From positions 13,640,001 to 13,704,000 of the forward strand of contig NC_086380.1 of assembly GCF_036588685.1 (NCBI RefSeq): 64,000 nucleotides of DNA, written 5' to 3'. The position numbers and the translations under genes are program-made. The DNA is from Mytilus trossulus. Its lineage: Eukaryota. The notes beneath the pieces are model-generated. The model was given only the letters and a program-made list of their open reading frames with translations. It was not told the origin of the DNA and ran no database searches. Positions 18,670 to 45,664 of this stretch are shown piece by piece (the stretch's first letter is position 1; each line of letters begins with the position of its first letter).

Positions 18670-18914
18670 TTAATCTGGATTTGAAAAATCTCCAATATCA
18701 TTTTTCGCTTTTTTGGAACAAGCTTTCCGTGTTACATGCCTACACAGACTAGATCGCCATTTAAACATTTCTCCACACAGGCTACACTGAAATGAAGCTT
18801 CGCCATGCACACACTTTACATGATCCTTGAAATAACGCCTATCATTAAAGATCATATCACATTGTGGACACTGGTATTGTTCTTCTACTTTCTTTTTCTG
18901 TTCGGTATCTAATG
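18670..18914 (-). CDS. Variable cassette V4 exon d (2 fingers, terminal)
   Basis: Acceptor ctttttttcag, phase 1; YQCPQCDMIFNDRRYFKDHVKCVH and FQCSLCGEMFKWRSSLCRHVTRKAC; V4 totals 741 nt = 246 aa + stop. Confidence 0.87.
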
Positions 18915-19369
18915 CTGAAAAAAAGAGTAAAAAAGGTCCAGTCCATATAATGAAAATAGAACGCCGCATTTCTGTTGAATGAAACTTCGTGCATATTATA
19001 CTTAAGCTAGTACAAGACATGCATGTTTAGACTTTTACACAAACTACACAGCTTCAAACTTTCAACAAGAAGCGTGATTTTAAGACTGAACAAACACTTC
19101 TATTATCCATACTTCAGATCCACTCTTTTACATACAAATACGTGTGTTTGTATAGACTTTTACTAACTATACTTCAGAGATACAACCCTTTACAAGACAC
19201 AGGCATATGTCTTTGTAGAATAAGACTTCTACTAACTATACTTCAGATAAAGACTCTTTTTACATACAAATACATGCATTTGAACAATGTATAGACTTCT
19301 GTTAACAATACTTCAATAATTCAAATCTTTACAGACAAGTATATATCTTTGTAAACTTCTTGTATCTAC

Positions 19370-21241
19370 ACTTTTGAGCTACAAACATTTAAAGAGAAGC
19401 AAGTGTTTTTGTAGACTTCTACTGTATTTTATTGTATTTCAGAGCTAGACTACAAACCTTTACACCGACACACGTCTCTTTGTAGACTTATAATGTACTC
19501 CAATGCTACACACCTTTACACCGAAACACGTGTCTTTGTTAACTTCTACTGTATTTCAGAGCTACAAACCTTTACACCGAAACACGCGTCTTGGTAACTT
19601 TTAATGTATTTCAGAGCTACAAATGTACGAACCTTTACATCGGAACACGTATCTTAGAAGACTTCTACTGTATTTCAGAGCTACAAACCTTTACACCGGA
19701 ACACGCGTCTTAGAAGACTTCTACTGTATTTAAAGAGCTACAAACCTTTACACCAGAACACGTGTCTTAGAAGACTTCTACTGTATTTAAGAGCTACAAA
19801 CCTTTACACCGAAACACGTGTCTTTGAAGACTTCTGTATTTCAGAGCTACAAACCTTTACAACGGAACACGTGTCTTTGAAGAATTCTACTGTATTTCAG
19901 AGCTACAAACCTTTACAACGGGACACGTGTCTTTGAAGACTTCTACTGTATTTCAGAGATACAAACCTTTACAACGGAACACGTGCCTTTGAAGACTTCT
20001 ACTGTATTTCAGAGCTACAAACCTTTACAACGGAACACGTGTCTTTGAAGACTTCTACTGTATTTCAGAGCTACAAACCTTTACAACGGAACACGTGTCT
20101 TTGAAGACTTCTACTGTATTTCAGAGCTACACACCTTTACAACGGAACACGTGTCTTTGAAGACTTCTACTGTATTTCAGAGCTACAAACCTTTACAACG
20201 GAACACGTGTCTTTGAAGACTTCTACTGTATTTCAGAGCTACAAACCTTTACAACGGAACACGTGTCTTTGAAGACTTCTACTGTATTTCAGAGCTACAA
20301 ACCTTTACAACGGAACACGTGCCTTTGAAGACTTCTACTGTATTTCAGAGCTACAAACCTTTACAACGGAACACGTGTCTTTGAAGACTTCTACTGTATT
20401 TCAGAGCTACAAACCTTTACAACGGAACACGTGTCTTTGAAGACTTCTACTGTATTTCAGAGCTACACACCTTTACAACGGAACACGTGTCTTTGAAGAC
20501 TTCTACTGTATTTCAGAGATACAAACCTTTACAACGGAACACGTGCCTTTGAAGACTTCTACTGTATTTCAGAGCTACAAACCTTTACAACGGAACACGT
20601 GTCTTTGAAGACTTCTACTGTATTTCAGAGCTACAAACCTTTACAACGGAACACGTGTCTTTGAAGACTTCTACTGTATTTCAGAGCTACACACCTTTAC
20701 AACGGAACACGTGTCTTTGAAGACTTCTACTGTATTTCAGAGCTACAAACCTTTACAACGGAACACGTGTCTTTGAAGACTTCTACTATATTTCAGAGCT
20801 TCAAACTATACAACGGAACACGTGTCTTTGAAGACTTCTACTGTATTTCAGAGATACAAACCTTTACAACGGAACACGTGTCTTATAAGACATCTACTGT
20901 ATTTCAGAGCTACAAACCTTTACAACGGAACACGTGTCTTTGAAGACTTCTACTGTATTTCAGAGATACAAAACTTTACAACGGAACACGTGTCTTTGAA
21001 GACTTCTACTGTATTTCAGAGCTACAAACCTTTACACCGGAACACGTGTCTTAGAAGACATCTACAGTATTTCAGAGATACAACCCTTTACAACGGAACA
21101 CGTGTCTTTGAAGACTTCTACTGTATTTCAGAGATACAAACCTTTACACCGGAACACGTGTCTTAGAAGACATCTACTGTATTTCAGAGATACAAACCTT
21201 TACAACGGAACACGTGTCTTTGAAGACTTCTACTGTATTTC
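19370..21241. repeat. 56-bp tandem repeat (~30 copies) derived from the V4 exon c end plus donor
   Basis: Unit aaacctttacaacggaacacgtgtctttgaagacttctactgtatttcagagctac, period 56 (e.g. 20083 to 20139); decays toward 19100. Confidence 0.97.
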
Positions 21242-21348
21242 ATTGTTTTCCCACACCGTTGGCACATCCATTGCTTATCTGTTGTATGACTTAGCATGTG
21301 TTCCCTAAGATGTCCTTTCTGTGAGAAATCTTTATTGCATACTTCACA
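21198..21348 (-). CDS. Variable cassette V4 exon c (2 fingers; absent from the ORF track)
   Basis: Acceptor atattag, phase 0; CEVCNKDFSQKGHLREHMLSHTTDKQWMCQRCGKTMKYSRSLQRHVFRCK; joins exon b as VFK|CEVC; donor aaag|gtttgt, phase 1. Confidence 0.87.
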
Positions 21349-21567
21349 CTAATATATTAAATAAAAAATATAAATATTATAAAAAAATATCAAAAAAAAG
21401 ACAAACGATTTATTTTTTAAAGATCATCATTGATTTCTACTTTTGATAAAATACAGAGTACGTTTGTATCTTGCAGTAATGGAGATAAATCACTTAAAAC
21501 GGCTTACATAGAATGTTTTAAACTTGGCATCCAAGTTATGGGAAATTAACAATATAAACATAAATGG

Positions 21568-21835
21568 TTGGAACATTGTCCTCAAGTAATTTGAAATTTA
21601 CCTTCTCAACAGATATGTTCGGAACATGGTCTTGCGAGTTATTGGAAATTTACCTTGTAAAGAGAAATGTTTGGAACATGGTCTACGAGTTTCGAGTTTA
21701 CCTAAAAACAGAAATATATCAGGAACATGGTCTACGAGTTATGGAAAATTTACCTTAAACACAGAAATTTTTGGAACATGGTCTCAGAGTTATTGAAAAT
21801 TTACCTTAAACACAGAAATATTTGGGACATGGACT
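21568..21835. repeat. ~51-bp tandem repeat (~5 copies) derived from the V4 exon b end plus donor
   Basis: The gg(a/g)acatgg...aaatttaccttaaacacagaaat unit recurs at about 21570, 21621, 21673, 21722, 21773 and 21824. Confidence 0.85.
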
Positions 21836-22108
21836 CCGTGGTCCCGGCGAACATGTTGTTGTAGACTATACTGCCGGCTATAAACTTTTCCACAATCGGC
21901 GTGCCGGCATGTAAATATCAGTGGATCAGCATGACGCTTTCTATGTTCCTTCATTGCAGCCGGACTGGCAAATATTTTACCACAATCACATGTCTGTGTT
22001 TTGCCCAGATGAATCAACTTATGTCTGGACAAATTTGACTTTCTATTAAATACTTTTTTACACTGATTACATTTAAATCCATCACTCTGCTGCTTTGTAT
22101 TCTTTTTA
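21805..22108 (-). CDS. Variable cassette V4 exon b (3 C2H2 fingers)
   Basis: Acceptor cttttctag, phase 2; FKCNQCKKVFNRKSNLSRHKLIH, CDCGKIF..H..H, CRHADCGKVY..HVRRDH; donor aag|gtaaat, phase 0. Confidence 0.88.
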
Positions 22109-22266
22109 CTAGAAAAGAGAAAAGAGTAACAAACAATATCAAATGTAGATATTTATTACTATATTTGATGTAAAGGATATATAGAGATTAATTTTCTAGT
22201 GTTAGAGTAAACGAATGCAGATCATGCATGTGAAATAATATTTGGCATAATAAGAGTCCATTTATC

Positions 22267-23116
22267 GGTGTCTTCCTCGAATGCCAACATTTTATGTGTG
22301 ACCTATTCCTTGAATGCCAACAAAAATATTTCAATGGATGTTTATATAATAACAATAGGTGTTTTTAGAACTATCTAAATGTTTTTAAAAGTATAAAATA
22401 ATTAATGAGCTTGATAAAATTGCAACATTTTATTACTTTTTGATAAGAAAAATGGTAGATTTTAAGGTTAAAATTATGAATTTTAAAGAAATAAATATTA
22501 CATATTAAAACGTTTTTACAATTCCTTGCTTTCTATTAAAAAAAAAGATAACTTGGGAATGGAAGTGTTTATTTACATAAGACTTTTCAGAATTTTTATC
22601 AAAGAAATTTGCATACAGATATATTTAAAAAAAAAAAAAAAATATTAAAGATTTATCATCAATATATCTGAACAATTGCAAACTGAACAAAATAAAACAT
22701 AGTTATCTAACATGAGAATCAAAATTTCAAGAAATTCCATCAAGTAATATTAGAGAAATTACAGCACACAAAACTATATAAATGTTGAAAAAAAACCTTG
22801 AAGTCCAAAGAGAATTTGAACAAACTGGATTTCATGACAATATGCACATGTTGACTTTGTTGAATTTTAAGATGATCCATATTTATTTTTAAGTACAACT
22901 GAATGCAGTAACAGCAACACATGATTTTCGAAAACTTGAAAAACATGAACTTGTTTTAGCTACCTGTTTTTACCTATCTGTTTAATTAGTATGATTGTTT
23001 TGATAAGCATTCATTTTTGTTGTGATAACTACTTGCACTTATTCCTTGAACGCCAACATAATTTTACAGGTAAATTGTCGGTAGATCAAAGGATGTTGGC
23101 ATTCAAGGAATAAACC
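22267..23116. mobile_element. Non-autonomous TIR element (MULE/Merlin-like) in a V4 intron
   Basis: ttcct(c/t)gaatgccaacat terminal and subterminal inverted repeats; TSD catttatc (22259-22266, 23117-23124). Confidence 0.7.
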
Positions 23117-24124
23117 CATTTATCGACACGGACTTTTCATCAACTCCTGGCATGATTACGCGTAATTACCTTGAGGCTATGTTTTTTTTAAAAACATATG
23201 AAAAAATCATCAATGTAGAAACTAGTTCAAAACTGCAATGTTGATGGAACTTCAAGCATTTATCCCCATGCAAACAGTATAGCCAGCTAAATAGGCCTAT
23301 GACGCAGTTTAAATCGTTATTTAACATACATATAATTAAGAGACTTTACCATTGTTCATACAATTTAGTGTCATATATACATAAGCAAATTGCAAAAAAA
23401 AAAGATACAAACAGTATAAGAGGGACATTTTTAAACAAGACTATAATAAAAGTAAACAAAAGAAGTGTTTCTCATCAAGGCTAAAAATCATGCTTGTTAA
23501 AGATGGTATTTGATGAAAATTTCATTAAAAATATGTGAACACTGCAATGTTCTATCAAAATTGTCTGCTGTTCCAATATGTAAAACTTTCTACTATTTTA
23601 GTTTAAAAAGCATGCCATTAATATTGTTAAAAATAGTAGATTTTCACTCTTGATTATTATAATAGACACTCAAATCGTTTTTGGTATACCAATTTCATTA
23701 TGTGTTTAAAACTTTTAAAACTTTTTTATGCCCCATTTATAGACATTATGTTTTCCGGCCTGTGCGTCTAACCGTCTGTCCGTTCGTTCGTTCGGTCGCC
23801 CGTCTGTCCCGCTTCAGTTCCAAGTTTTTGGTCGAGTTCGTTTTTGATGAAGTTGAAGTCCAATCAACTTGAAAACGTAGTAAACGTGTTTCCTATGATA
23901 TGATCTTTCTAATTTTAATGCCAAATTCGAGATTTTATCCCATTTTCACGGTCCACTGAACATAGAAAATGATAGTGTGGATGAGGCATCCGTGTCCTTA
24001 GGTTTTATATATATATTGACATACTGTGAGTGAAACGAACGGATAGAGAGGAAACCAGCGACATTTCACACTTCCGATTATTCAGACATCAAAACTGTCC
24101 CTTAGTAATTTGAAATGTACTTAC

Positions 24125-24165
24125 TTATCTGTATCAGAATTTGCATCTTCTGTGAAATCCGAATC
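24125..24165 (-). CDS. Variable cassette V4 exon a (41-nt acidic micro-exon)
   Basis: Acceptor ttattttcag, phase 0; encodes DSDFTEDANSDTD; donor aa|gtaagt, phase 2, matching the phase-2 acceptor at 22108. Confidence 0.8.
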
Positions 24166-26334
24166 CTGAAAATAAAAATACATTTAAATCGGGCAGACTA
24201 AATGAATATCCTAGTACTTTGGTGGAATTACATATGTATACCAAATCCGGAAGACACAAGGTCCTTTCATGAAAGAAATGACTGAGGCATTATAGTAATA
24301 CGTTCATAATATAAATTGAGATAATTTTATTATGAATGAGCAAATCTATAAAATACTGCTTGTATCAAAGTTGTTATGCAAAAATGGTTTACTCCTAATT
24401 GAATTTGTTGTTTCAAATTGGTTAAGAACCTTCTCGTTATTAGTGATTGTGATAATTTACCAAATTTGACAAAATTAAAGTACCAAAACCTGCAGCTTTT
24501 TACCATCATTAAACAGGAGTGCACATTCTGAAGTGTCTCGCCTTCTTTACTGACCATTTTTTTTTATGTTAAATAGTCCTAAATATAAAATTTTACTAAA
24601 AAATATCACATAAAACTGAACATGATCCAAGAAAATTAGGTCAGGGTTAGATAAATAACAAGAATATGTCAACAGCACTCGCACTATTATTTTCTATGTT
24701 TAGTGGACCGTGAAATTGGAATAAATTCTCTAATTTGGCGTTAAAATTAGAATGATCTTATCAAAGAGAACATGTATATTAAGTTTCAAGTTGATTGAAC
24801 TTCAACTTCATCAAAAACTACCTTGACCAAAAACTTTAACCTGAAGCGGGACAGACGGACGAACGAACAGACGAACGGACGTACAGACCAGAAAACATAA
24901 TGCCCCTCTACTATCGTAGGTGGGGCATAACAATCGTGAAATACATGTTGTCCTTGCAATCATTGAATGCAGAAAATATAGTTGACAAATAGTTTCTAAG
25001 AAACAGACCTAACCTGGAAAGCTAAACATTGATCAATGAACCATGAAAATGAAGATAAGGACAGACGAACCATGTCAGACAGATACAAATGTAAGTACAA
25101 CTTCCAATCAATTTGCACCAAATGTATTGAACCATAAAAATAAAAAATAATGTCAATTTTAGATGATACCTGCCAGACAGACATATTCACCTTACAATCA
25201 TTCCATTCAAGAAATATAGTTGACCTATTGCATATAGTTTAAGAAAACGGACCAAAACACAAAAACTTAACAATGAACAATGGACCATGAAAATGAGGCC
25301 AAGGCCAAATAAAACCTGCGAGACTGATATGTACGTCATAAAATATTACCGTACACCAAATATAGTTGACCTTTTGTATTTACTATTAGAAAAAATACAC
25401 CAAAACACAAAAACTCAACATTGACCACTAAATATAGAATAATAGGTAGTTTCGTTTTTGATACTGACTATATCATGTGGAGTATCTAGACGAGCCCGTT
25501 AGAGCGAGTTTATATAGTCCATATGATATAGTCAGTATCAAAAACGAAAGTACCAATTATTCTGTTTATCGGTAATTATGACGTGACGCAATGTATTGCC
25601 TAATATTTTCAGTATACAGCCAGTACGTTGATACTCGAATATTAGGCAGTAAGATCAAAGGGAAAATATACGAATTACCTATAAACCATGAATATGAGGC
25701 CAAGGTCGGATGACACCTACTAGTTGGCCCTTACAATCATTCCATACACAAAATATATAGTAGACTTATTGTTGAGGTCAGATGAAAACTGGTTGACGGG
25801 CATGAGAACTTTGCAAGGTACGCTCATTTTAAAATTAATATAGTTACATTCTATAACTCATAAGAAAGAAATTAACCTTTAGTAGTTACTGAACAATGAA
25901 AATGAGGTCAAGGATAACGAACATATGCCAGACAGACACATGAACTTCATAACATGAGGCATTCCTAAACAAAATATGAATCACCCATGCAGGTCTTCGA
26001 CCTTCTAAAATATAAAGCATTTTAGAAGTGAGTAAATAGCCGCCGCCGGACCACTGTCCTTAAGCTTATGTTGAGCTTTCTCCGACAAATGAAGCAGGCT
26101 CGACAAAAATGCTTCATATTTTGAAATATGCATTACGTTGTAAGTACTCAAACTGTAAACACATAAAACATCGGAAGACAATTCTATTCTGCAAACTTTT
26201 CAGTTCAGCGATAATTTATATGTCGGACCAAGCTTGATTAAGAAAAGTACGACCTCTGTCACTAGGAAAATTTATTCTGAGTTTTTCCGCATTATTTATT
26301 CGTGTTATCTCTACAGCTGTGCACTCATTGTCAT

Positions 26335-26653
26335 GACCACCTCCCTATTTCCAAAGGGGCACTTGTTTGGTTCCCAATTGTCATCGTGCACCGAAGCTGT
26401 ACGTCTACCTAATGTTGACTTATTCAAGAAAGTTTTCCCATATTCTTGGCATATATATAAGTAGATGGTATGGAATTTGGTATTTGTTGGCCTTGTGTGC
26501 AGTATATTTTTACTCAGATTTGGAGGTACAAATGTATGTGTACAAGTTGTACATGCAAATGCTGCATCGTGTATCTTCTTGTGCTTTCTCCATCCGTCTT
26601 TATTTTGTATTTACATTATCAAATTTCACAACAGTGCACATCATTAGTTTTAG
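26335..26653 (-). pseudogene. Decayed C2H2 zinc-finger cassette
   Basis: - strand translation across stops and a frameshift gives HCCEI*..KYK..WRKHKKIH, FACTTCTHTF and YICQEYGKTFLNKSTLGRRTASVH (C>Y and H>R ligand losses). Confidence 0.65.
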
Positions 26654-27966
26654 CTAAAGATGGAGTCAAGTTTAGCTTTGAAAAAAACCACGAACATCTT
26701 AGGATAAGGTTAAAACTTCTTAGCAACGAATATCCAGAATAAACAGAGAGAACTTACATACCGAGACCCAGACACAGAACAACGAGAAGCGACAAACAGG
26801 AAAATATAAACAACACGGAGCCAATATTATTTGAGTCGGTACATGATCACAATCAGAGCTTCTCGGATCAACATACAAAATTCTTGACCCACGTTTGAAC
26901 TGAAGACTAACGTTATGTAATAATATGAAAGAAACTAAATCCTGCTCTGTGTGTACTGTCCAATACATATACTTATGTTGGTTTAACCATACAGTACCAT
27001 GAGTACTGTACATGTAGATCGTATCATTTAAGTTTATATCGCCGTACGAAGAACACTGGTGAGAAATTCGTTTAAGTTTACGGACATTTTCGTATGAATT
27101 TGGAAATGAAAAGAGATGTTTTATAATAGAAGGAAAACAGTTTCTGGCCTTTGTTAGTCTTGTATTATTTTAACTTTTAGTTTCTTGTGTACAATTTGGA
27201 GTTTAGTATGGAGTTCATTATCACTGAACTAGTATATATATTTGTTTAGGGGCTATAGCTGAAGGACGCCTCAGATGTGCGGGAATTTCTCGCTGCATTG
27301 AAGACCTGTTGGTGACCTTCTGCTGTTGTCTGCTATATGGTCGGGTTGTTGTCTCTTTGACACATTCCCCATTCCATTCTCAATTTTGTTCTTTAAAGTC
27401 GACGAACAGGTTTGCTTTGTCACATATTTTGGTAAAATTTTGCAAACAACTTTTGCTCATTGAACTATTATAAAGAATAATAACTGAAATTCGAGAAGAA
27501 GAAAAATATGCATTTCAAGATCTATTTTCTAAAATATTATTAAAATTCTTTAAAAAAGATGAACATTGATTTGAATAGACAGCACATATATAATTATGTC
27601 GGGTTTTTTTATGTTTTATAAGTTGTCATTATAAAACATATCTAAGTATTTTTTTACTTGTATTTGTACACGATAGTCAATTGCATGCTAATAAAGGTAA
27701 CAATCATTTGTACTTCAAATTTATTTCGTAAGTCTGCCGAATATATCAAGATGTTAAGTCAGTATTGTTATTTCATTGGTTGCTTTTAAAGTAAAAAAAC
27801 GCACTCCCTCGTCTGATATTGTTATTTCATTGGTCGCTTGTAAAGTGAAAACGCACTCCCTCCGATCCGCTGACAAAGTTCCTGAGAGAGAAGATATTGT
27901 CAAACAAAACTAGTGGTATAGTGACATGATTAGGCATGAGATGTTTTAATTTGTATAGTGGCATGA

Positions 27967-28632
27967 TTAGGCATGAGATTTTATGTGTCGGTAGTAACTA
28001 GCAGCCCAGTTAAAAGATTTGCCGCACGTGCTACATACTCGCACATTGTTGCTATGTTTCCCGATCATGTGACCACGATGTGCTGCTTTTGATGTCAGTA
28101 TGATATCACACACTTCACACTGGTATGTTCGTGGCTCATTATTTTCTGAGTGACCTTTTTCAATATGCTGAGTTAAATGTGCTTTGTACAAGAACGCTTT
28201 TTGACAGATGTCACACTTGTGTGGTTTTATGTTTTTATGCTTATTCACGTGACTTTCATAATGCTGTATACTAATAAAGGTTTTATCACAAAAAGTACAC
28301 TTTCGTTTATATTCACCACTGATTTTCTTCAAGTGATAATTAAGTCCAGCAAGACTTGTAAACCTTTTTGAACAGTGTGTACAAATGAGACCTTCTCCGT
28401 GTTTATGTTTAGTGTGAACTTTCAGCATACAAAGATCAGGAAATCTAGAGTCGCATTGGTCACAGAAGAACATGTTCTGGTCGTGGATACGGCGATGTCT
28501 ATACAGACTACTCGGCCAAGGTGTAGTAAAGTCACAGTCGTTACATTTTAGCATCTTCTTTGTCGTTCTATCTGTGCCAGCATTAGATTGGTCTCTGTTT
28601 GACGCTCCTTGGTGAGGTATCTTTCTCTCAGC
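27967..28632 (-). CDS. Variable terminal exon V3: 7 C2H2 zinc fingers (third degenerate)
   Basis: Acceptor cattttcag at 28634-28633, phase 0; 26 open codons (AERKIPHQG...TKK) precede the ORF Met at 28554; - strand AATAAA at 27725-27720. Confidence 0.88.
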   Translation of the reverse strand, partial: AERKIPHQGASNRDQSNAGTDRTTKKMLKCNDCDFTTPWPSSLYRHRRIHDQNMFFCDQCDSRFPDLCMLKVHTKHKHGEGLICTHCSKRFTSLAGLNYHLKKISGEYKRKCTFCDKTFISIQHYESHVNKHKNIKPHKCDICQKAFLYKAHLTQHIEKGHSENNEPRTYQCEVCDIILTSKAAHRGHMIGKHSNNVRVCSTCGKSFNWAASYYRHIKSHA

Positions 28633-30634
28633 CTGAAAATGTAACCATAAAACTGCTCACTTGGTGAATTTGACGCAAATTTCCATATTTTTTTATAAGA
28701 ACATCCGAAATTAAACGGAAAACTTTAAGGACAATTCACATTATGTTCGTAAAGATTGTAAACCGATTATAATTTGAAAGCTTGTGTCTCTTTTTTCCAT
28801 GTCATTCGATGTTTATAGATATAGGAAGATGTGGTATGAGTGCCAATGAGACAAATCTCCATCCAAGTGACAATTTGTGAAAGTAAACCATTATAATTCA
28901 AGAGACTAGGCTCACACCAAATAGCAAACTACAAAGGACTTCCAAAATTTCTAGTGTAAAACCATTCAAACGGGGAAAACAACGGTCTAACCTATTTAAA
29001 AAAATCGTAAGGGTTCTGCGGAATCCAGTGTCTCGCCTACTTTTGCTGTTAATCAAACAAAAATGAAAAGAAAAATCAATAAAAATATTCCTTTCGATAC
29101 TATCTTTTGATTGCAAGGAGTTTCTGTACAAGTTTGAAAATGAAAATGTGCCTAACTTGACCCTAAACTGACAGAATTGCGACACAAAGTGTTTAATATA
29201 TTGATTTCGTATTCGACATGATTGCATACAAATTATACGAAATATTAGTTTTTCATGGTCTTCGAGCTGCGCGCAGGGTCAATGCAAACAGAAAGAATAC
29301 AAAATTGTAAAGCTGGGTGAGTCACCAACATCGTTATATAAACCAGTGAAATATTTTTTAAAGAACAATATTAATATTAAACATGTGTTCCACAGATTTT
29401 TCAACACACTGGTATCTCATGTTATATCTCTCGAACAAGTCGTTATTAAATAGGACCCTTTTAAAAATATATTTTAACAAAAGACACAACGAGCACATCA
29501 TCTCGTACGCAGTGTTACAGACGATTTCATTGAGTGTGTAGGCCAATGCAGTGTTACAGACGATTTCATTGAGTGTGTAGGCCAATGCAATATGTTTTGT
29601 TCACTAGCCTGGTAGCCGAACAGTGAAGTCATTATGAGGTAAGATAGACTATGGTTCTTTTTTTGGAAAAAAAAGTTTGTTTCCAGTTTCGGGAGAAAAC
29701 AATAATTTGTTTTTGACCCTGAGAAAAAAAATTTGTTTCTTTCACCCTCAGCTGTCACTATATGTTATAGTAAAGTTGAAAGAAAAAAAATGTTTTTGAC
29801 TTGTCCCCAAAAAATTTGTCCAGAAAAAAAATTCATTCATATATATCCTGCTTTTATTATGGTACATGCAAAAAGCCTGCAATTGAACAGATCTGATTCT
29901 TTACACCTATTTATAATCAAGATGAGCACTTTTCAAAGGTATTTTCTGATGCTCAACATTGATATTTGCCTAAAGTCTATACACTTATTTTATGATCGTA
30001 ACAAGGACTTAACAAGGGGATTTTCTGATGCTTAACATTAGTTTTTTGCTAAACGATAACATGAATAGATTTCTTGGCTGAGTGCAGCTGGATACAACCG
30101 AAGACGTCCAACACTGAACAGTTATATATACTATATTTCTTGGTGCATCTTTTATATCTGCTAGATGAAAGCATGAGTTCAAATTTCCAATCAATTTTAT
30201 TACAATCTTCTAATAGATTTAACAAACAGTTATAACCAATAAAAAAAAAATTGGTAAAAATAACAATTGTAGAAAAAAAAGTGTTTCTCGTAGTAACATT
30301 TGTGGAAAAAATAGAGTACATGGTTAACAGTATAAGGGAGCTAACATTTGATTTTAGGGGTTACAATTTGCTTAAAAGGCAAGCCAAAAATTAAGATTGA
30401 AAATGGCAGGATAACAAGTTATGTAAAAAGGGAATAAGCTACTATCTAAAAAAGGACTGAATAAAGTGAAAAATTAAAAAAAAGCAGGACAGAGATTAAA
30501 ACTGAAAACAAATGCAGGACTATTTTTTTCACCCTAGCCCCCTTTTTCATCCTAAAAATAAATTAGTATCTTCCTAAGAGTTATCTATAAATATAACTGA
30601 GGCATAAAAAATAATAATAACAGATCGTTCATCC

Positions 30635-31174
30635 TCAATGTTTTTTTCTAGTATGATTAGACCTGCTAGATCTGTATCGAAAGCCTTTGTTGCAAACTTG
30701 GCAATGATATTGGGCTACACCTTTCTTGTGCTTTCCTGTCACATGGTCAGTTAGTAGATCTTTCCTGTCAAATCTCTTAGGGCACATTGAACACTGGAAA
30801 CGTTTAGCATTAAGAGTGTTACAAACTTTCAAGTGCCTCTGGTATGAACCTTGGTATGTGAACTGTTTATTACATTTTCCACACTTGAAAGGTTTATGTC
30901 CAATATGCGTGTTCCTGTGGCCAAGATAGTGGGCGTTGTCTGCAAACGTTTTGTGACAGATCTGGCATTCATGTCTCCTTTTCTCAGTGTCAGAGTGACT
31001 TATTTCATGACGTCTGTGGCCACTTTTTGTTTTTAATTTTTTCCCACAAAAACAGCAAACAAACACATTTTGATAATTGGTCCTGTTGACTGCAGTTGAA
31101 ACAGCTGATGAGTTTTCATTGATAAGTTCATGAAATGACTCATCTAATGCCTCAATTGTAACGTTTTCTGTCAT
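30635..31174 (-). CDS. Variable terminal exon V2: 5 zinc fingers (C2H2, one C2HC)
   Basis: Acceptor ttattacttcag at 31176-31175, phase 0; fingers CCFC..H..H, CQIC..H..H with GHKPFKC linker, CGKC..HLKVC, CSMC..H..KH, CQVC..H..KH; stop at 30635. Confidence 0.88.
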   Translation of the reverse strand: MTENVTIEALDESFHELINENSSAVSTAVNRTNYQNVFVCCFCGKKLKTKSGHRRHEISHSDTEKRRHECQICHKTFADNAHYLGHRNTHIGHKPFKCGKCNKQFTYQGSYQRHLKVCNTLNAKRFQCSMCPKRFDRKDLLTDHVTGKHKKGVAQYHCQVCNKGFRYRSSRSNHTRKKH

Positions 31175-33647: not shown

Positions 33648-34879
33648 TATATAGTACCAGAAAATCTGGAAGGACTGCATGCATGATTAATTTGTGCAGA
33701 ACAGTATAAGACTATAGTCAGTTTGGGACTGTTCGTCAATGATTGAATACATAAATGTATTAATAATTGATAGTAAATATTGTAAACTAAGTGTATATAA
33801 TATAGTATACTATAGTAAATTAAAATTATGGCACAATCAAAACACATCTTTTTATTTTTCATCTTTACATACTACTATTATAAACAAAGAAAATATAATA
33901 ATGTTACAAAATAATTAGATACCAGTGTCTGCTATTGAGTATTTATATTCCATTTAAAATTAGTTTAAAGTTAAGTGAAATAAGGGATACGCCTTTTATT
34001 AGAAAAAAGTGTATTATCATAATTAATTATGTTCAAAAGTGCCTGTTTAAAACAGATTTTAACACGCCAAGTTTACTTTACAATAAATATATATTTAAAT
34101 TCTCGAAAGACAATGTTCAGATCAGTGCCAAAGTTGCTTTTCATAAATTGTTTGTTAAAAAAAAAAACAACAAAAACGGTTGATATATACATGTATAGAC
34201 GAAACCAGGTGATTGTGTAGTAACAATATTGACAAAACAGATTTATTTTAATTTGACATGACCCTTTTCTTTCGTTCCATACACAGAAATACAATTATTG
34301 AGATGCTCATAATAACTAAATTTGCAATCTCCGTGTCAATATCTATCTTCCCGTACCTTTCTTTCCGTACAATGTGAACAATTTAACGAGAAATTAAACA
34401 ATTTCAAGGCAAGGTTCACTCAATTCCTCATTTTGACATACATTTTGACTTATTTCTCCGTTAATATAGAACGGTTGTAGAAAATATTGCATCTCACAAT
34501 AGAAAATAGTTGTATATGTATATATATTCTTTGATATCATAAAAAAAAATTAAAAATAAGGAGAAACCTACCTTTCTTTTGTCTATTGGTGTTCCGTCAT
34601 TGTGCCGGATGTTAGATACCATCCAGTCCGAGCAAATTTTGCTGGTGTGGTTTAGACACAGTGAAGTAATTTTGTTAAATTGTTCCCAATTTTTTTTAAT
34701 AACACAAATTCATATTTACAGCTTTATACTTTTGAAAAAATCTTAATTGTTGTTTATTCTTACGTACTGCAATCTTGTTAAAAGCCGTGGTTTTAATATT
34801 AACACTTTCACAATATTCACACAGACACTGGATAGGTTTCTCTGGTTCTGTAATTTTACATTCTTTTGTCTATTTTTTT

Positions 34880-36955
34880 TTGTCATTATCTCTATGCCAC
34901 TATCTATATGTCATTATCTGTATGTCACTTTATGTGTGTCACTATCTGTATGTCACTATACGTGTGTCACTATCTGTATGTCACTATACGTGTGTCACTA
35001 TCTGTATGTAACTATCTCTTTGTCATTATATGTATGTCACTATAGGTATGTCACTATCTGTATATCACTATCCGTATGTCACTTTCTGTATGACACTATA
35101 TGTATATCACTATCTGTATGTCACTTTCTGTATGACACTATATGTATGTCACTATATGTGTGTCACTATCTGTATGTCACTATATGTGTGTCACTATCTG
35201 TATATCACAATCTGTATGTCACTATCTGTATATCACTATCTGTATGTCACTATATGTATGTCACTATCTGTATGTCACTATATTAATGTCATTATCTGTA
35301 TGTCACTATCTGTATGTCACAATCTGTATGTCACTATCTGTATGTCACAATCTGTATGTCACTATATTAATGTCACTATCTGTATGTCACTATATCTGTA
35401 TGTCACTATCTGTATGTCACTATCTGTATGTCACTATATTAATGTCACAATCTGTATGTCATTATCTGTATGTCACCATCTGTATGTCACTATCTGTATG
35501 TCACTATATGTATATCACTATCTGTTTGTCACAATCTGTATATCACTATCTCTATGTCACTATATGTATGTCACTATAGGTATGTCACTATCTGTATATC
35601 ACTATCTGTATGTCATTATCTATATGTCACTATATGTATATCACAATCTGTATGTCACTATCTGTATATCACTATCTGTATGTCACTATCTGTATGTCAC
35701 TATATGTGTGTCACTATCTGTATGTCACTATATTAATGTCACTATCTGTATGTCACTATCTGTATGTCGCTATCTGTATGTCACTATCTGTATGTCACTA
35801 TATTAATGTCACAATCTGTATGTCATTATCTGTATGTCACCATCTGTATGTCACTATATGTATGTCACTATATGCATGTCACTATATGTATATCACTATC
35901 TGTATGTCACAATCTGTATATCACTATCTCTATGTCACTATCTGTATGTCACAATAGGTATGTCACTATCTGTTTATCACTATCTGTATGTCATTATCGC
36001 TATGTCACCATCTGTATGTCACTTTCTGTATGTCACTATATATGTGTCACTATCTGTATGTCACTATCTGTATGTCACTTTCTGTATGTCACTATCTGTA
36101 TGTTACTATATGTGTGTCACTATCTGTATGTCACTATCTGTATGTTACTATCTGTGTGTCACTATCTGTATATCACTTTCTATTTGTCACAATCTGTATG
36201 TCACTATAGGTATGTCACTATAGGTATGTCACTATCTGTTTATCACTATCTGTATGTCACTATCTGTGTATCACTATCTGTATGTTACTATATATGTGTG
36301 TCACTATCTGTATGTCACTATCTGTATGTTACTATCTATGTGTCACTTTCTGTATATCACTTTCTATTTGTCACAATCTGTATGTCACTATATGTATGTC
36401 ACTATCTGTATGTCACAAACTGTATGTCACTATATGTATGTCACTATATGTATGTCACTGTATGTATGTCACTATATGTATGTCACTTTATGTATGTCAC
36501 TATATGTATGTCACTATCTGTATGTTACTATCTGTATGTTACTATCTGTATGTCATTATCTATATATGTCTTTATCTTTGTCACTATATGTTTGTCACTA
36601 TCTGTATGTCACTATTTGTATGTCACTATTTGTATGTCATCATCTGTATGTAACTATCTATGTCACTATCTGTATGTCACTATATGTATGTCACTATATG
36701 TATGTCACTATATGTATGTCACTATTTGTATGTCATCATCTGTATGTAACTATCTATGTCACTATCTGTATGTCACAAACTGTATGTCACTATATGTATG
36801 TTACTATCTGTATGTTACTATCTGTGTGTCACTATATGTATGTCACTATTTGTATGTCATCATCTGTATGTAACTATCTATGTCACTATCTGTATGTCAC
36901 TTTCTGTATGACACTATATGTATGTCACTATCTCTATGGCACTATCAGTATCTGT
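34880..36955. repeat. 14-bp minisatellite (tgtcactatctgta)n
   Basis: About 2 kb of 14-bp units with variants; it generates the spurious YVTICMSLSVCH ORFs. Confidence 0.98.
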
Positions 36956-37040
36956 ATATAAAATTATATTGGATATTGTGTCTTTTTGATGAACAAGATA
37001 AACAGCATGCTTCTTTATTTTAAGTTTCAGTTGTTTAACT

Positions 37041-37406
37041 TTACTTGTTTCTGTCTTTTTCTTTTATTCTTCTTTTCTTTTGTGAAGACAGAGTTTCTCG
37101 GTATTGTCTCTTTTTTTCTCTTTGCACTCTTTGTCTTTCTTCTTCTTTCTTTATGTCATGTCTTGTCAGACATGTCAGAATGTTTTTACTTCCCGACTTT
37201 TTAATATGCTCTATTTTTTTCCTTTCACGCATATTTCGCATCCTTATTCTACTTCTTTCTTTATTTTCTTGCTTCTGTTGTTCATTCCACTTTGCTCTTC
37301 TTTCCCGATTTACTTTGGCATGTTTTTGTTTTTTGTTCAATCCTGGAGTATCTGGACTCTGTGCAGATGGACATGCACTCAATCTCATTTTAAATCCTTT
37401 CCCAAT
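37041..37406 (-). CDS. Candidate variable terminal exon V1: basic coiled-coil, transposase N-terminus-like, 121 aa
   Basis: Acceptor tttttaag at 37408-37407, phase 0, open to the stop at 37041; K/R/E-rich (ERSRIRMRNMRERKK...SQKKRRIKEKDR); a CLCEYC remnant lies beyond the satellite at about 34800-34830. Confidence 0.45.
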   Translation of the reverse strand: MGKGFKMRLSACPSAQSPDTPGLNKKQKHAKVNRERRAKWNEQQKQENKERSRIRMRNMRERKKIEHIKKSGSKNILTCLTRHDIKKEEERQRVQREKKRQYRETLSSQKKRRIKEKDRNK

Positions 37407-38041: not shown

Positions 38042-39225
38042 TTAACCCTTTCCTCCATTGAAATTTTTGTTTTGCATACTTGATTCGCATAGGATTTTTC
38101 AAATAATCATTGAAAATATGCTTTGAAGTATTAATGCATTGCGAAAAACAAATATTCCATCAAATAAATTTTAGTGGGATATTCTTATGAATATCCTTTT
38201 ATATTCCATACAAATTTTATTTTAAGTCTGATGCAGACACTTTGTAGTCAAAGCATTTCCATTTAGGTACTACACAGGCGCCAAAAGGCGTCATTATGAA
38301 GTAAAGGCAGGGTTGGCAAAGTATTACCCGCCCGCGGGAATTCCCAGGTGGGAAAACCGGGGTTTTGCTGGGCTGGGCAATACTCCCAGAAATAGGGAAT
38401 AGTGGGCATTACTGGGCAATATAATTTTTTAAGCTTATTTTAATATAAAATAGTAAAGTCTTGGTGTAGTTTCATAGTATTACTGCTAAATATATACTTT
38501 TTATACAGATAACCATTGACAGTCATTTCTAAAAGAATGAAAAATTCAATTTCATTCCCTTCTACATTGTATGTAGCCAGAATACAAGATTTGCACATAA
38601 GCACAAATCATTGTTTCAATAATCCATACTTTGAAAAAAAAATATTGCAATGTTTAAGTGAATTGTTTATTTAAATGTTATACATTCATACATTTGTCAT
38701 ATTGCTAAATAAACACCCTAAGGGGTCATGCCATTAACACATGAAAAACACAATAAAATTGAAAGGGCTGATTATTGTTACATAAACAAATCTGCATTAT
38801 AATCAGAATAATTACTTACTAATAAGTGACAGTACATATGTATACTTTATTCAAATGTATTTTTTCTTACATGTAATTCATTTTTGTAATTGTTAATTTT
38901 TAATAGGAGTTATATTTATTTAAAAAAAAGTTTTTTGCTTTATGAATTACATTTGTACAGTTTTACCTGAATCCAGACAAACAAAAAAGGTTATATATAT
39001 CTTAAATGTATAAAATTTGTGTTTGATCACTGAATCCTCTATAAAATTCAGACTAGTATATTATATTACCCAGTATTGCCCAGTATTACCCACTAAAACC
39101 CAGTAAAACCCGGGTTTTCCCAGTATTTCCCACTGGGCTGGGCAATACTCATAAAACCTGGGTTTTTGCCAACCCTGAGTAAAGGGGGTTGCGTCAAAAG
39201 GCATCATTATGGAGGAAAGGGTTAA
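38042..39225. mobile_element. piggyBac-like MITE carrying a nested hAT MITE (38308-39177)
   Basis: Outer element TTAA-CCCTTTCCTCCAT...ATGGAGGAAAGGG-TTAA; inner element CAGGGTTGGCAAA...TTTGCCAACCCTG with 8-bp TSD agtaaagg. Confidence 0.88.
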
Positions 39226-39482
39226 AACACCATAAATCAAATCTTATTCCAATAAAAAAATGGGGTGCATGTGTGTGACGTCACAATGAAAATTGTAGCT
39301 GCCAAAATAATGTGACAAAAGAACGAAATCAATTTCAAACAGATCTATATTAGTATGCATCAGTATCCTTAACAGTGAGTGCATAATAAAAACAGTCTGA
39401 TATATGTCTTATATTTTATTGAATTGAAATTTGTAACAAAATTTGATTCACCTATCAAGAAGAACACTGTAGTCGACATGGT

Positions 39483-39865
39483 TTAAGGATGTACTTAGGT
39501 GAGGTTTTAGAATTTGTGTCAAATGTTCGGACTCCTTGGTGTTTTTTTATACAATACAATGTAAATTATTTTGCCACATAACACCCATTTATTTTTTCAT
39601 ATAAGAAATTACCAAAATTTTAGAAGATTCTTGATTTTCTTTGTTTTGTTTTGAGACCCAATAATATCAATGCAAATATAAGGTAAAAGTCAGAGTCAGC
39701 TTTTTCTCGCCATATTTTAAATCTCAAATATCTCGAAAAGGAGGTCCATGACCTATCAATATTTAGCTTTTTTTATCCTTAATTGATGCTTTACCAGCTT
39801 ATAGTATCAAATTTAACTTCTTAATTTATTAATTTTCACCTAACCTCACCTAAGTACATCCTTAA
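39483..39865. mobile_element. Kolobok-like MITE
   Basis: TTAA-GGATGTACTTAGGTGAGGTT...AACCTCACCTAAGTACATCC-TTAA. Confidence 0.85.
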
Positions 39866-41946
39866 GCAGAAAAAAAATCAGTTGTCTTGGTGTGTCCATA
39901 TATAGACCTTTGGATCCTTGGACTTTTGAAATCCACCTTGGTACAATCTGAAAAAATAAAATTACATGTAAAATTTGACAATGTTCAAGTGAAAAAAAAA
40001 ATTGTTATCAAAAAAGGTCATAAAGGTAGGAAAGTTAAATATTTTTAGCATTTAGGAACAAATTTACTTCAAACATGACAAATACATATGCATATAATTA
40101 TAAATCATGCATTATACAAGGCAATGAATCAAAATAAAAATCAAACTGTTAGTTACAGAATTGTTTTTAATATTTGAACAGATTAAACAATATAAACATA
40201 TAAAGTACTACATCTACAAGGGATGATCAAATAATTTCTTAATTTACCGTGTCTTAAAGCCATGAAAGCTGAAATTTCCAAACATTTAAGAAAGAGATCG
40301 CATGCAGGTATGCTTTTTGTTCATGAATACATTTACTTTCATATCATTTAATGTAAAAATATAGTTACCTGTACCTCTATGACATCAATGGACAATACTG
40401 CTTGGTGGTACATTGTATATGTATCTGAATGCTATTTTGTCATGTTTGTTTCCTTGGATTCATTAAAGTCAAAAACTACATTAAACCATGCAGTTGGTGG
40501 TCTGTGTTACATTTATTTTTCCATAAAGGATCCAATAACGTTACCCAAGATATCTCAATATATGTGTTGATAGACGCCCAAAATTTTCTCTGCTTTCTGC
40601 CATCTTGGTATAAAAAGGCCGGGATTATCCTGGAAGATTGCAGTCTCACACTCAAGATATATTTATCAACTTCAGCAGCCATAGGCTGATCCTGGAAGGG
40701 GGGTCCGTCACTGAAAGCCTTGGTTTCTATTTATTCAAATGGATAGGAGCATGTCTAACATGTCTAAAGAAATAGACATGCAAAAATATTTTTGATGAAG
40801 TTTTACATCTGTTTTAGAATGTTTTATTTATGAAGTTATTAAAGTTCATAGACTATAGTTAAAACATATTCATTGATAGTGGATAGGGAAACAAGATTTG
40901 CAACTTATATTAACCCTTTCCACTTTGCAGGTGCGAGTGCTGCCTTGTAGCGGCATTAGCCTGCTCTTTTTCAAAATCTACAAGGGTGTCTTTTACATGC
41001 AACAGATATGGCTCTCTCTTAACACGGGTCAGCCAGAAACCATAAAAAATGGCTAACTTTGCCAATATCTTTTAACAAATTTGAAAGTAAAAAAACATCA
41101 AATTTTCTACTTTGTGTACATGTATCATTGTTGCTTTCATGTGCACCAAACAATTATTTATTTCATTACATGTACAAATAAATGTATTTAAAACATGCAA
41201 GTATATTATATTTGTGATGTATCATAATGTATTGCAAGCAGTGCCAAGCACATACATTTGTGTACATTTGTACATATAACATACGACATGAATGAACATT
41301 GCACATGTACTGTGCATGATGTGTACACTCTGACTGTTGTAATACATGTACATGTATGGTAATAAAAAGATAATTTTAAGCAATTTACAAAGAACAAGTA
41401 AACCTCACCATGCTCACAGACCAAGGAATTATAACAACTCTTTTTTTTTCAAAATAAATCATCATGTCTTGTTACTCTTGTACAACATGTACAATTTGGT
41501 CAAATGAAGGTAAAATTGAGAACGGTTACCATGGTTACAGGAAATGTGTCATACAGACAGCAACCTGATCAACATGCCTAACATGATCAAAGAGAAGTAA
41601 AAGCCAAAGGGGATTTTTTTCAATTGAACTGTTCAATACAACGCATACAACATACAACATTTAAGGACCTTTTATCATGTTTATAGCTGATTGTGCAGTA
41701 TGCTCAGTGTTGATGGCTACATTTATATTGATCTAAAGTTGTTAATTTCTGTGTCATTTCGTCTCTTGTAGAGAGTTGTCTCATTGGCACTCATACCAAA
41801 TCTTCCTAGCTAGTGTATTGTACATCATGTAAATGTGTATATCTATTAGAGAAAAAAAAAAAAAAAATTCAGCAATTTTCTATTTGTAAATGGGCATAAA
41901 TCTAGAATGGCAAAAGTGACGGCATAAACAATCATAAAAAACTTAC

Positions 41947-42906
41947 TGTGTCTTGTTCTTCTTTTATTACAAAATCTTTCTGACTTTCCTCCTGGTTATC
42001 AGCATCTCCAGCATCATCATTATCATTGTTATCTCCTGAATCTTCCTCAACATCACCACCTTCCTCCCCCATTCCTACTACTTTAGATACTAACTGTTCA
42101 GCATATTGTTTAACAGATTTCGTAGAACTTTTTAACTTTTTATTTTTCCCTTCCAAAGTTTTCTTATTTGGTCTTTTTTGTTTTGATTTATTAGACTGAG
42201 ATGAACCCGATTCTTCTTCCACAGAATCTAACTCATTATCAGAATTATCATCATCACTATTTGGTTCCTTTTTGATAATAAAATCTTGTAATGAACCACT
42301 TTCTGTTGATTCTGATAATTTAGGAGTATTTGATACGTCAGTGTTTTGATTATCATGATTATCATGATTTATGTGATTATCATTAGAATGTACAGAAGAA
42401 ACAGATTTAACAAACATTTGTCCATCACGATTCGTAGCTAAGTAAATTGGATGTGGTCCACTCTTCGAATCCTTATTGTTAACTGTATTGTTCTCAAACA
42501 CCTCATTGGTGTGCTTTTCTGATACTTCATTACTATTGCCCTTTTGAAATTCTTTTCGATTCAGTAGAGATTGGAAGTCTAACTTTTGGCAGAGATTTAC
42601 AAAATCCTTAATGTCTGAATCCCCAGTAAGATCTACTTCTCCTGTATATAAATAGGTTACTAATGTCTCTACAATATTCTTATTAAATTCTGTTAAATCA
42701 AATGTATTTATATCACCACATAGAAAACCTATTGACTTCAAGTGGCAGCTCTCTGCAGCAGCTAACACGACACGGTGAACTGGGACTAGACCAGAGTTAG
42801 TCTCTATGTAAAAATCACTATATTTTCTTTCTTTCCTTAGAACATTCAAAGTTTTCAGCAGTTTTTCCCCATACCTATCTTCTTTAAGAAAAACTTTTGC
42901 CATCAT
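41947..42906 (-). CDS. BTB/POZ-domain constant exon of a BTB-zinc-finger (ZBTB/lola-like) gene, 320 codons
   Basis: BTB signature LLKTLNVLRKERKYSDFYI...VHRVVLAA...LVTYLYTGEV...FVNLCQKLDF; acidic/basic linker with SUMO-like IKKE and IKEE motifs; acceptor ctttacag at 42912-42911; donor aca|gtaagt at 41946, phase 0. Confidence 0.92.
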
Positions 42907-45664
42907 TGACCTGTAAAGATATATAAAATACTAGTTAGTCAGGATTTTTGTTCCTAACATTAAACACTTTAAATGACAAAAAATTCTTAAAAAAAAAAAA
43001 GTTTTAAGATGTGGGGCAAGTAAGTGAGAAGTCTTGAGGGAAATGGGAAACCTTGTAATATAAAGAATCAATTGCTTAGCGGAGTGCAGCTGGAAACAAC
43101 TGAAGAGGTCCAACCCTGAACAGTTGGGGCAAAAATGGACACAATATTCGTGCTTGAAAAAGGCATGATTATGATGACAGGTCTGAACTTAGATTGTAAT
43201 TAAATATTTACAAAAAAGAACTTTAATCACTAGTCAAAGAACTTAGAATTGGATATATGATTTGAATTTGTATTCTATTTTCTGCTTTTGTGCAATATTA
43301 TACACTATGTGGTTGGAAATCCTCCCCCCCCCCCCTTTTAGTCTGCCTAAAATAAAACAAAAAAAGTATTTTTTTACCCACCCCAAGTCTTTAACAGAAT
43401 ATGACATGCATATGGCAGATTTTACAGTATTGTGTTCTGTCTCCTACTTTCATGTTGCTAACGTGACGGAGACAAAAATAAGTAACGTTAGCGACATTTG
43501 GACATGTAACATGAGCAACAACATCTTTAAAAGTTCAAATGTATGCACACAGTGATGTTTAATATATGCCTGGAGTAATAAAATTGTACAGTCTGGTTTA
43601 GAATTTCTAAATATACAGAATGTCATTTGCAGGTGTACTTTATATCAAATGAATACACATGAAACCAATTCGTAATAGTAACATTAGCAACATCTACTAT
43701 CATGACATTACGTTTTGTTGCGAACGTCTTTTTGATGGACGGAATACATTTAAGGTCCTCTTGTAACGATATTACATACAACTAACCTTCTTTGCTACCC
43801 CATCATGTGAAGGAACTGACTCCGAATCTAATTCTGCAAAGGGCGATATCGTAACTCCTATACAGGAGAGTTACAGATCTAAATATATGTTGCTCACGTG
43901 ACACTGATTTGGACGGAAACCTCAAGTAGTAACGTTCGCAAAAAATAAAACAGCCAATGATATTGATTCCTCAAGTCCTTTGACCCCCTTACGTCATCCA
44001 AATTTAATATGATTGCTATTTTCAATTATTTATAAAACCCGGGATAAAAATAACTACAATTGCCTGTCTGAGAACCAACAAGAAAATTGCGATCGTGACA
44101 TACCACAATGGATGGAAAAGACGTGACGTTAGCAACAATATTATTAAATTACCTTTTTTAGCCTTTACCAATAAAAATCTGCCTTAAAGTTATGATTAAA
44201 ACACAAAAGAAGACTTTTTATTAAAATATAAGTCCATGTGATAAGGCTCAGCTTATAAATAATACTTCAAAATTCCACTCCAAATAAGCTGGATGTCAGT
44301 AAAGTAGGTCATGATGTCTATTCCATGTCCAATATTTTGAAATTGAAAACCCTCTAATTCTAACAAAAAACACAAGCACAGAGTAATTTTTATTTTTATT
44401 TACTCAGAAAGACACATTTTATTCAATAACATAATGCATTACTCCATTACACAGTCTGTTTCACAGTTTCAGCAATTGCTTTTTTGATGGATACAAAAAA
44501 ACAATAATTCCTTCTTATTGTAAAATCTGCCATAATCAAACTAAAATTATTATTCCTTACTCAGCATTTTTTTAAATATTAGAAAAATAAAAAAAAAATT
44601 GACAGCTAACCACCTCAGGACAATATTTCTTCATGCATATTTTTAAAGTAGTGAAAGGGAGGTAATCCTAACATTTAATTTATACTTTTTTAAAATGATT
44701 TATTCATTAACCAGGAAACCCTTGTTTCTTAATTTCTGAATGGTTTGACTCCCAAGTCAATCATAACCATCCCTTTGTGGTAGGGGAATCCGGGTCCGTT
44801 CGCTCCCACTTATGTTTCACCCCCTTTCACTTTCACACCCTACATATTCGCGCCCAATTTTGATTGGTTTTGTGTTGAATAACTTTGTAATCAAGTTTTG
44901 GCAAGTGTATTCTTATAAGTATAATTGTTGTCATTGTCTCAAAATAAAGTGAGAAACATTTTTTTGTGTTGAATAAATCTTAATCATATTTTGGATATTG
45001 TATTGTTATAAAAAATAATCCTTTCTAAATAAAGTGGAATTCTGTCAATGTTTTATTTTGTGTTGAATAACTCTTCATCATGTTTTGGTTAGTGTGTTGC
45101 TATTACCATGATTACTTTGTTTCATTGACTTGTTTCAAAATGAATTAAGATTCTTACTACGTTTGTTTGTGTGTTGAATAAATTTTATCATGTTTTGGTC
45201 ATAATATTGTATTGCTATATATTTCATTGTTTCATTGTTGAGATCAAAGGGACCAAGCTGTTAAAAACAATTATCTTTTGTGTTTAAAACAGTTTTTCAT
45301 TTAAAATATTCAATGTTTCACGCATACCAAGCTATAAATACATTCAGTATTAACACCAAAGCAATATAAAACAACTATCATGATTTTAAAATTATTCAAC
45401 TGAAATTTGAATTAAAATTGGGCGCAAACGTGTTGAGTGCGAACGGACCTTGGGAGAAAATTTAAAAAAAAAAGAATTTAAACCATTCAGATATCCTCAT
45501 GTCCATTGTGAGGACAAGGATAATAGCACGAAATGTTAGGTTAAACAGTTAAAGTATATAAATTTGAATTTAAAGATTGAACTAGAACATTTTAAAAGAT
45601 AAACTTGTATCACCTGGTGTAAGAAAATGTGTGTCAAAAAACTTCAAACTTGTACAAAAACCCT

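Follow-up and report, generated by a model that had tools for sequence, protein, structure and literature searches.

The choice among alternative 3' exons enables a constant BTB domain to be combined with different C-terminal DNA-binding or interaction modules, as known for mod(mdg4), fruitless, broad and tramtrack. In fruitless and broad, four or so finger pairs are available, and in mod(mdg4) the ends are of the FLYWCH type, with cassettes located on both strands and obligate trans-splicing. As for lola, the BTB is of the arthropod-specific TTK type, bears the FxLRWN motif and forms hexamers, and about 20 isoforms with one or two fingers each are produced with partial trans-splicing (PMC11426971). 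The FxLRWN motif, located in the BTB's N-terminal extension, is the defining mark of the arthropod TTK group and is reportedly lacking in Mollusca, and the Drosophila BTB-C2H2 genes outside this group have been reported with one isoform apiece (PMC11426971). The exchange of entire DNA-binding ends on a constant BTB has been regarded as a hallmark of this arthropod group. Here, a locus of the mussel Mytilus trossulus is presented, which lies on the minus strand of a 64-kb window (the whole stretch of DNA analysed, G000:C8:13640001-13704000) and very probably constitutes one BTB-C2H2 transcription-factor gene, whose single BTB exon would be cis-spliced to one of several stop-terminated ends.

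A constant BTB exon and its proposed alternative ends

The constant coding exon (41947..42906, minus strand) is an open reading frame (ORF) of 320 codons running from 42906 to 41947, identical to residues 1-320 of XP_063448964/65/66. Its 3' end reads ...GAC ACA and is followed by the GTAAGT of a phase-0 donor, the intron starting at 41946. The sole Pfam match in this exon is a BTB domain (PF00651) at residues 20-116 (E 9.7e-10), after which comes an acidic and basic linker. Since an acceptor-like ...tctttacag lies 4 nucleotides 5' of the ATG, with its putative AG at 42912-42911, the BTB exon is probably preceded by another, non-coding exon in the 5' untranslated region.

Downstream of the BTB exon, on the same strand and in order, four acceptors are found at 37406, 31174, 28632 and 24165, each with a pyrimidine tract and AG and each in phase 0 with an ORF of its own; every unit has one stop (at 37043-37041, 30637-30635, 27969-27967 and 18672-18670, respectively), and the cassettes lie within 24 kb. 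One common donor, several same-phase acceptors downstream and a stop in each unit make up a lola-type geometry, and ends of 121, 179, 221 and 246 amino acids added to the constant 320 give isoforms of 441, 499, 541 and 566 amino acids. A six-frame scan of the window placed all C2H2 motifs on the minus strand, from 18718 to 31057, so that the finger array is bounded inside the interval delimited by an earlier note, which a model had made from the sequence alone.

When the BTB exon was used as query, three M. trossulus RefSeq isoforms of one gene came up, namely X1 (XP_063448964.1, 566 amino acids), X2 (XP_063448965.1, 541 amino acids) and X3 (XP_063448966.1, 499 amino acids), which were mapped onto the window exon by exon. 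Three of the four ends were recovered in this way, all on the minus strand. The one-exon cassette V2 (30635..31174; 179 amino acids, five C2H2 fingers), which opens with an ATG right at the acceptor, corresponds at 100% identity to residues 321-499 of X3, this isoform being the BTB exon plus 31174-30638. The one-exon cassette V3 (27967..28632; 221 amino acids), with six canonical fingers and a degenerate one, corresponds at 100% identity to residues 321-541 of X2, i.e. the BTB exon plus 28632-27970. The four-exon cassette V4 is found in X1, i.e. the BTB exon plus 24165-24125, 22108-21805, 21348-21198 and 18914-18673, again at 100% identity. It is opened by a 41-nucleotide mini-exon, V4a (24125..24165, DSDFTEDANSDTD), starting right after AG and ending in phase 2, and continues with V4b (21805..22108, fingers 1-3), V4c (21198..21348, fingers 4-5) and V4d (18670..18914, fingers 6-7 and the TAA stop, with ATTAAA 137 nucleotides downstream). 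Six of the V4 fingers are canonical and one is of the C-x1-C form, and no Met stands ahead of the first finger. The Pfam matches on the cassettes are to zf-C2H2 and zf-C2H2_4 (E 1e-15 to 7e-20). The fourth end, V1 (37041..37406), is a finger-less, basic terminal unit of 121 amino acids closed by TAA. Besides these units, a zinc-finger pseudo-cassette is present at 26314..26610 on the same strand, as a 99-codon open stretch with broken Cys/His ligands, resembling V3 weakly (E about 1e-3 when 12 sequences were compared).

Most of this layout had been anticipated in the earlier note, from the single BTB exon with its phase-0 donor at 41947 and no DNA-binding domain, and the four phase-0, stop-terminated units, all found again once each acceptor and frame was checked, to the decayed cassette, placed at about 26335-26653, and the missing Met before the first V4 finger. 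Its count of five, seven and seven fingers is right for V2, the sevens of V3 and V4 each including one atypical finger; three of the predicted lengths are those of X1-X3, and the 441 amino acids of the fourth stand as the sum of 320 and 121 by sequence.

The junctions recur in other mussels. In M. edulis and M. galloprovincialis, the same X1 (V4), X2 (V3) and X3 (V2) are listed, and in M. californianus X1 (V4) and X2 (V3) are alike and X3 carries a different, fifth cassette; isoform sets are thereby available in RefSeq for four Mytilus species, and the four annotations agree on junctions. In addition, contigs from a M. coruscus-like mussel hold BTB+V3 (537 amino acids on 1834 nucleotides) and BTB+V4 (564 amino acids on 2029 nucleotides), each in one frame and intron-free. 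Because the corresponding M. trossulus exons are 13-18 kb apart, these contigs of 1.8 and 2.0 kb are, judging from their lengths, spliced BTB+V3 and BTB+V4 mRNAs. Altogether, the junctions to V2, V3 and V4 are covered by RefSeq isoforms, those to V3 and V4 by the congener contigs as well, and that to V1 only by models from M. edulis and from M. californianus. The proposal of the earlier note, i.e. a constant BTB on mutually exclusive zinc-finger ends as in lola, is supported by the RefSeq sets of four species and by the two intron-free contigs.

Its expectation that automated annotation would split the gene is right for the older sets, where M. edulis has a KLHL38 entry (BTB+V1) and two KRAB entries (CAG2244071.1, V2 alone, and CAG2187187.1, V4 alone) and M. 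coruscus a KLHL38 entry, whose tail has no significant counterpart in the window; it fails for RefSeq, where one gene with X1-X3 is given. The RefSeq names differ by isoform, i.e. ZNF347-like, myoneurin-like and HIC2-like, as naming follows the finger array and the isoforms of one gene consequently bear unrelated '-like' names. The locus as read here would explain both these names and the split in the older mussel annotations.

That the pieces are listed apart in the older annotations of M. edulis and of M. coruscus, and that V2 has an ATG at its acceptor, could also be taken as signs of separate neighbouring genes, namely a BTB-only gene and three zinc-finger genes with promoters of their own, the joint isoforms being prediction artefacts. 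This is highly improbable, considering that V4 lacks a Met ahead of finger 1 and begins with a 41-nucleotide fragment right after AG, that the four acceptors are all in phase 0 with a single donor, that intron-free contigs hold BTB+V3 and BTB+V4 in one frame, and that the junctions agree across the four RefSeq annotations. Trans-splicing of a BTB transcript to independently transcribed cassettes, for which Drosophila lola and mod(mdg4) provide a precedent (PMC11426971, PMC13490949) and for which V2 and the V1 relatives could serve as independent transcription units, hardly deserves more credit; the cassettes are on the same strand, downstream and ordered within 24 kb, so that ordinary cis-splicing is sufficient, and no sequence feature requires splicing in trans.

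Under the single-gene reading with splicing in cis, the sole 5' splice site after the 320-residue BTB/linker exon would be joined to one of several phase-0 acceptors, each opening a unit with its own stop and, presumably, a poly(A) site behind it. Use of a proximal acceptor, with cleavage following there, would probably compete with read-through to the distal cassettes. The products would share the predicted homodimerising BTB and differ in their finger arrays (five in V2, six or seven in V3 and seven in V4), and a fourth, finger-less product would end in a tail that stems from the exonised piece of a multi-copy ORF now in decay.

Several repeats were observed in and around V4. In the intron after V4c (window 19450-21242), a 56-bp unit is repeated in about 32 copies with 93% match, and each unit copies the last 45 nucleotides of V4c (...QRHVFRCK) plus the GT donor; as each repeats the exon end with its donor, the real V4c donor has about 31 look-alike donors behind it, and RefSeq X1 takes the first of the V4c-type donors. 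At 21532-21832, repeats with 51/100-bp periods (about six copies, 77% match) overlap both V4b, at its 3' end, and the beginning of the following intron. A short repeated element has two copies, one in the intron after V4a (24100-23700, minus strand) and one at 12990-12844; it translates as ...FQ(V/I)DWTS.SSKT..TKNL.LKRDR... and looks like an interspersed repeat.

The finger-less unit V1 and its parent reading frame

The earlier note listed V1 as a basic coiled coil among the units; in the light of its relatives, V1 is no cassette built for such a purpose. Scanning a full set of 1.84 billion representatives with HMMER retrieved only nine relatives, in which the V1 sequence forms the N-terminus of longer proteins; it is 84% identical to residues 1-118 of a relative of 355 amino acids (P0038). 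The rest of the ORF lies behind V1 on the minus strand (34729..37027; tblastn of P0038 and P0042, TRF), in pieces at 37027-36944, in another frame, and at 34866-34729, with a satellite between them. As the relatives carry V1 as their N-terminus and the remainder of the ORF lies in pieces behind it, V1 is, by sequence, an exonised N-terminal fragment of a decayed and dispersed multi-copy ORF. The satellite which splits this ORF (34881-36951, about 2 kb) has a 14-bp period and about 148 copies, with plus-strand consensus TGTCACTATCTATA, and gives rise to numerous long but spurious ORFs on the plus strand.

In the M. trossulus genome, at least 23 dispersed matches to the V1-parent family were found, with intact ORFs of 758-1159 amino acids, including those of 1159 amino acids at 2972-6451 of L039 (G000:C17:4935001-4943000), 1068 at 3120-6326 of L040 (G000:C7:18379001-18387000) and 758 at 2228-4504 of L041. 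L039 and L040, the two longest of the copies examined, lie on different contigs and share 99.5% identity over 6.6 kb, as might result from recent transposition or from duplication in the assembly. A motif, ...C.CEYCENV..., is conserved in the family; Pfam gave no domain for the parent ORFs of 758-1159 amino acids, and in the Atlas search a parent ORF matched unnamed clusters only, with scores of at most 0.82. The V1-parent family is an element that is uncharacterised and probably mobile.

The alternative that function is confined to the zinc-finger isoforms, the product of V1 being splicing noise into an intronic repeat remnant, falls just a little short of an even chance. V1 is the 5' piece of a decayed ORF that is interrupted by a stop, by a frameshift and by a satellite of 2 kb, it has no Pfam domain, and no M. 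trossulus V1 isoform was among the proteins returned by the searches. Such noise is less readily reconciled with a frame open over 121 codons and an AATAAA 22 nucleotides past the stop, or with the BTB plus basic tail being modelled in three further species. The M. edulis model CAG2187189.1 has its V1 orthologue attached to the BTB at the same codon (64 amino acids at 88% identity), and in M. californianus isoform X4 (402 amino acids) carries a related basic tail, 45% identical over a 31-residue core (E 8e-6).

A number of points, the missing M. trossulus V1 isoform among them, weigh against the reading of the locus as one gene with alternative ends. The junctions proposed for M. trossulus rest on RefSeq models, and poly(A) hexamers are no more frequent near the stops than in the background (3.1 per kb). 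The V2 unit and the V1 relatives, having an ATG exactly at the acceptor, could be translated independently from separate transcripts. Regarding V1 itself, its first codon is ATT in M. trossulus and ATG in the relatives, its stop stems from the decay of the parent ORF, and its product may be a by-product.

The BTB domain and the history of the cassettes

The N-terminus of the constant exon (MMAKVFLKEDRYGEKLL), with its start VFLKEDRY, contains neither the FxLRWN motif nor LRWN, and the mussel gene is placed outside the TTK group on account of this. Moreover, the host is a mollusc, whereas the TTK group is restricted to Arthropoda, and the arrays have 5, 6-7 or 7 fingers instead of the usual one or two. 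The PDB sequence matches of the BTB are weak and correspond to KLHL/gigaxonin, BACH1, CP190, NAC1 and ZBTB BTBs, with no TTK-type chain up to E = 10. A bric-a-brac-like identity, offered by an Atlas match of the BTB exon (0.91), was set aside as a fold-level likeness, the TTK motif being absent. Features of the classical ZBTB factors are present, namely the BTB/POZ domain, lying N-terminally, and the C-terminal C2H2 array.

When modelled in two copies, the BTB scored 0.77 against 0.01 for the best of three controls, with at least 92% of the contacts common to runs and a pLDDT of at least 85; this mark is attained by 21 of the 30 proteins that had been solved as pairs, and by none of 23 solved as single chains, and the pass may stem from solved BTB dimers that the model has memorised. 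In the modelled dimer, residues 2-9 are in contact with 88-96 and residues 12-24 with 44-55, the former contacts fitting the classical strand-exchanged ZBTB dimer, in which beta1 of the N-terminal extension lies against the partner's beta5 and alpha1 adds an interface. Such isoforms may dimerise and would have distinct DNA specificities.

As for the cassettes, V2, V3 and V4 are about 30% identical among themselves and their orthologues 78-95%, which is comparable with the 90% of the BTB domain. In the phylogenetic tree, each cassette type forms a cross-species clade with ultrafast bootstrap of 99-100%, and branches are short within a cassette type and very long between types. Between M. trossulus and M. 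californianus, the recognition-helix residues are identical in all seven V4 fingers, and they differ between cassettes. The last finger of all cassettes, as well as that of the zinc-finger exon of a nearby paralogue, reads ...F(K/N)WRSSL..H, a common terminal signature consistent with local duplication of cassettes. The simplest history would be that one ancestral terminal zinc-finger exon was duplicated locally before the Mytilus species split, with purifying selection presumably keeping each cassette with its own recognition residues thereafter and cassettes being gained and lost between species.

Signs of such gain and loss are seen in two species. In M. californianus XP_052072774.1 (P0003), residues about 318-503 form the fifth cassette, with five fingers, after a V4a-type mini-exon; as this cassette also follows the mini-exon, the latter serves two cassettes in that species. 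A whole-genome search of M. trossulus gave no orthologue of the fifth cassette, the best match having 37% identity. Taking together the fifth cassette of M. californianus and the decayed one of M. trossulus at 26610-26314, cassette turnover appears to be ongoing.

The paralogue lies head-to-head with the gene, on the plus strand at G000:C8:13716160-13719044, i.e. about 33 kb upstream and about 12-15 kb past the right end of the window. It is the orthologue of M. californianus XP_052072769.1 and comprises a BTB/linker exon followed by just one exon, with six fingers; no further cassettes were found within 30 kb of it, and RefSeq gives one isoform. The multi-cassette design is repeated neither in this paralogue nor in the BTB genes at C8:31.2 Mb, which are ordinary single chains. 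Outside Mytilus, single-sequence and profile searches found no relative of the BTB exon, a result whose meaning is limited by their word-based prefilter. Because FxLRWN is missing here and reportedly absent in Mollusca, and the nearest paralogue possesses only one zinc-finger exon, the architecture is probably convergent with that of the arthropod TTK-group genes, as the earlier note had supposed.

The mussel locus among known BTB systems

The literature search yielded no description of this locus or of any lola-like mollusc gene. The earlier note likewise knew of none for Mytilus; the isoforms themselves are already in RefSeq as X1-X3. With its non-TTK BTB and long arrays, the mussel gene would indicate that array swapping on a constant BTB can evolve independently of the TTK group. 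Besides, four units, a single-cassette paralogue, a pseudo-cassette and a species-specific cassette could make it a small and young system in which the birth of such loci may be followed. More tentatively, and at clearly less than even odds, a lola-type combinatorial locus could have arisen independently in a lophotrochozoan on a classical dimeric, non-TTK BTB, with isoforms that homo- and heterodimerise, a finger-less one that modulates the others, and a turnover that rewires targets. If so, isoforms with different arrays of five to seven fingers would pair through the common BTB, the finger-less isoform would be a natural modulator derived from a repeated-element fragment, and the difference between V2 and the fifth cassette of M. 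californianus, together with the pseudo-cassette, would rewire target sets between Mytilus species.

The adjacent paralogue has the same BTB type (36-38% identity), with a BTB/linker exon ending ...EEQ... and then a zinc-finger exon, and the same terminal finger triad ending FNWRSSL; it differs in having a single zinc-finger exon and one RefSeq isoform. With the vertebrate ZBTB factors and Drosophila CG6792, the mussel gene shares an N-terminal BTB with its extension (in the mussel, a predicted strand-exchanged homodimer), a long linker and about five or more C-terminal C2H2 fingers. It departs from the classical ZBTB factors in swapping whole finger arrays, which is unusual among them. As for mod(mdg4), fruitless, broad and tramtrack, which also put alternative C-terminal modules on a constant BTB, their BTBs belong to the TTK group and are related to that of the mussel gene by the BTB fold only.

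The likeness to lola lies in the common 5' BTB exon or exons, in the alternative 3' units with C2H2 fingers and stops of their own, in the existence of finger-less isoforms, and in the sharing of an oligomerising BTB (in the mussel, by prediction) among isoforms that differ in their DNA-binding end. Unlike lola, the mussel locus has a non-TTK BTB, four units (five types across Mytilus), five to seven fingers per array and one common coding exon, and no sign of the trans-splicing that lola partly uses. From its predicted architecture, the locus works like lola without membership of the TTK group and is closer to the classical ZBTB factors.

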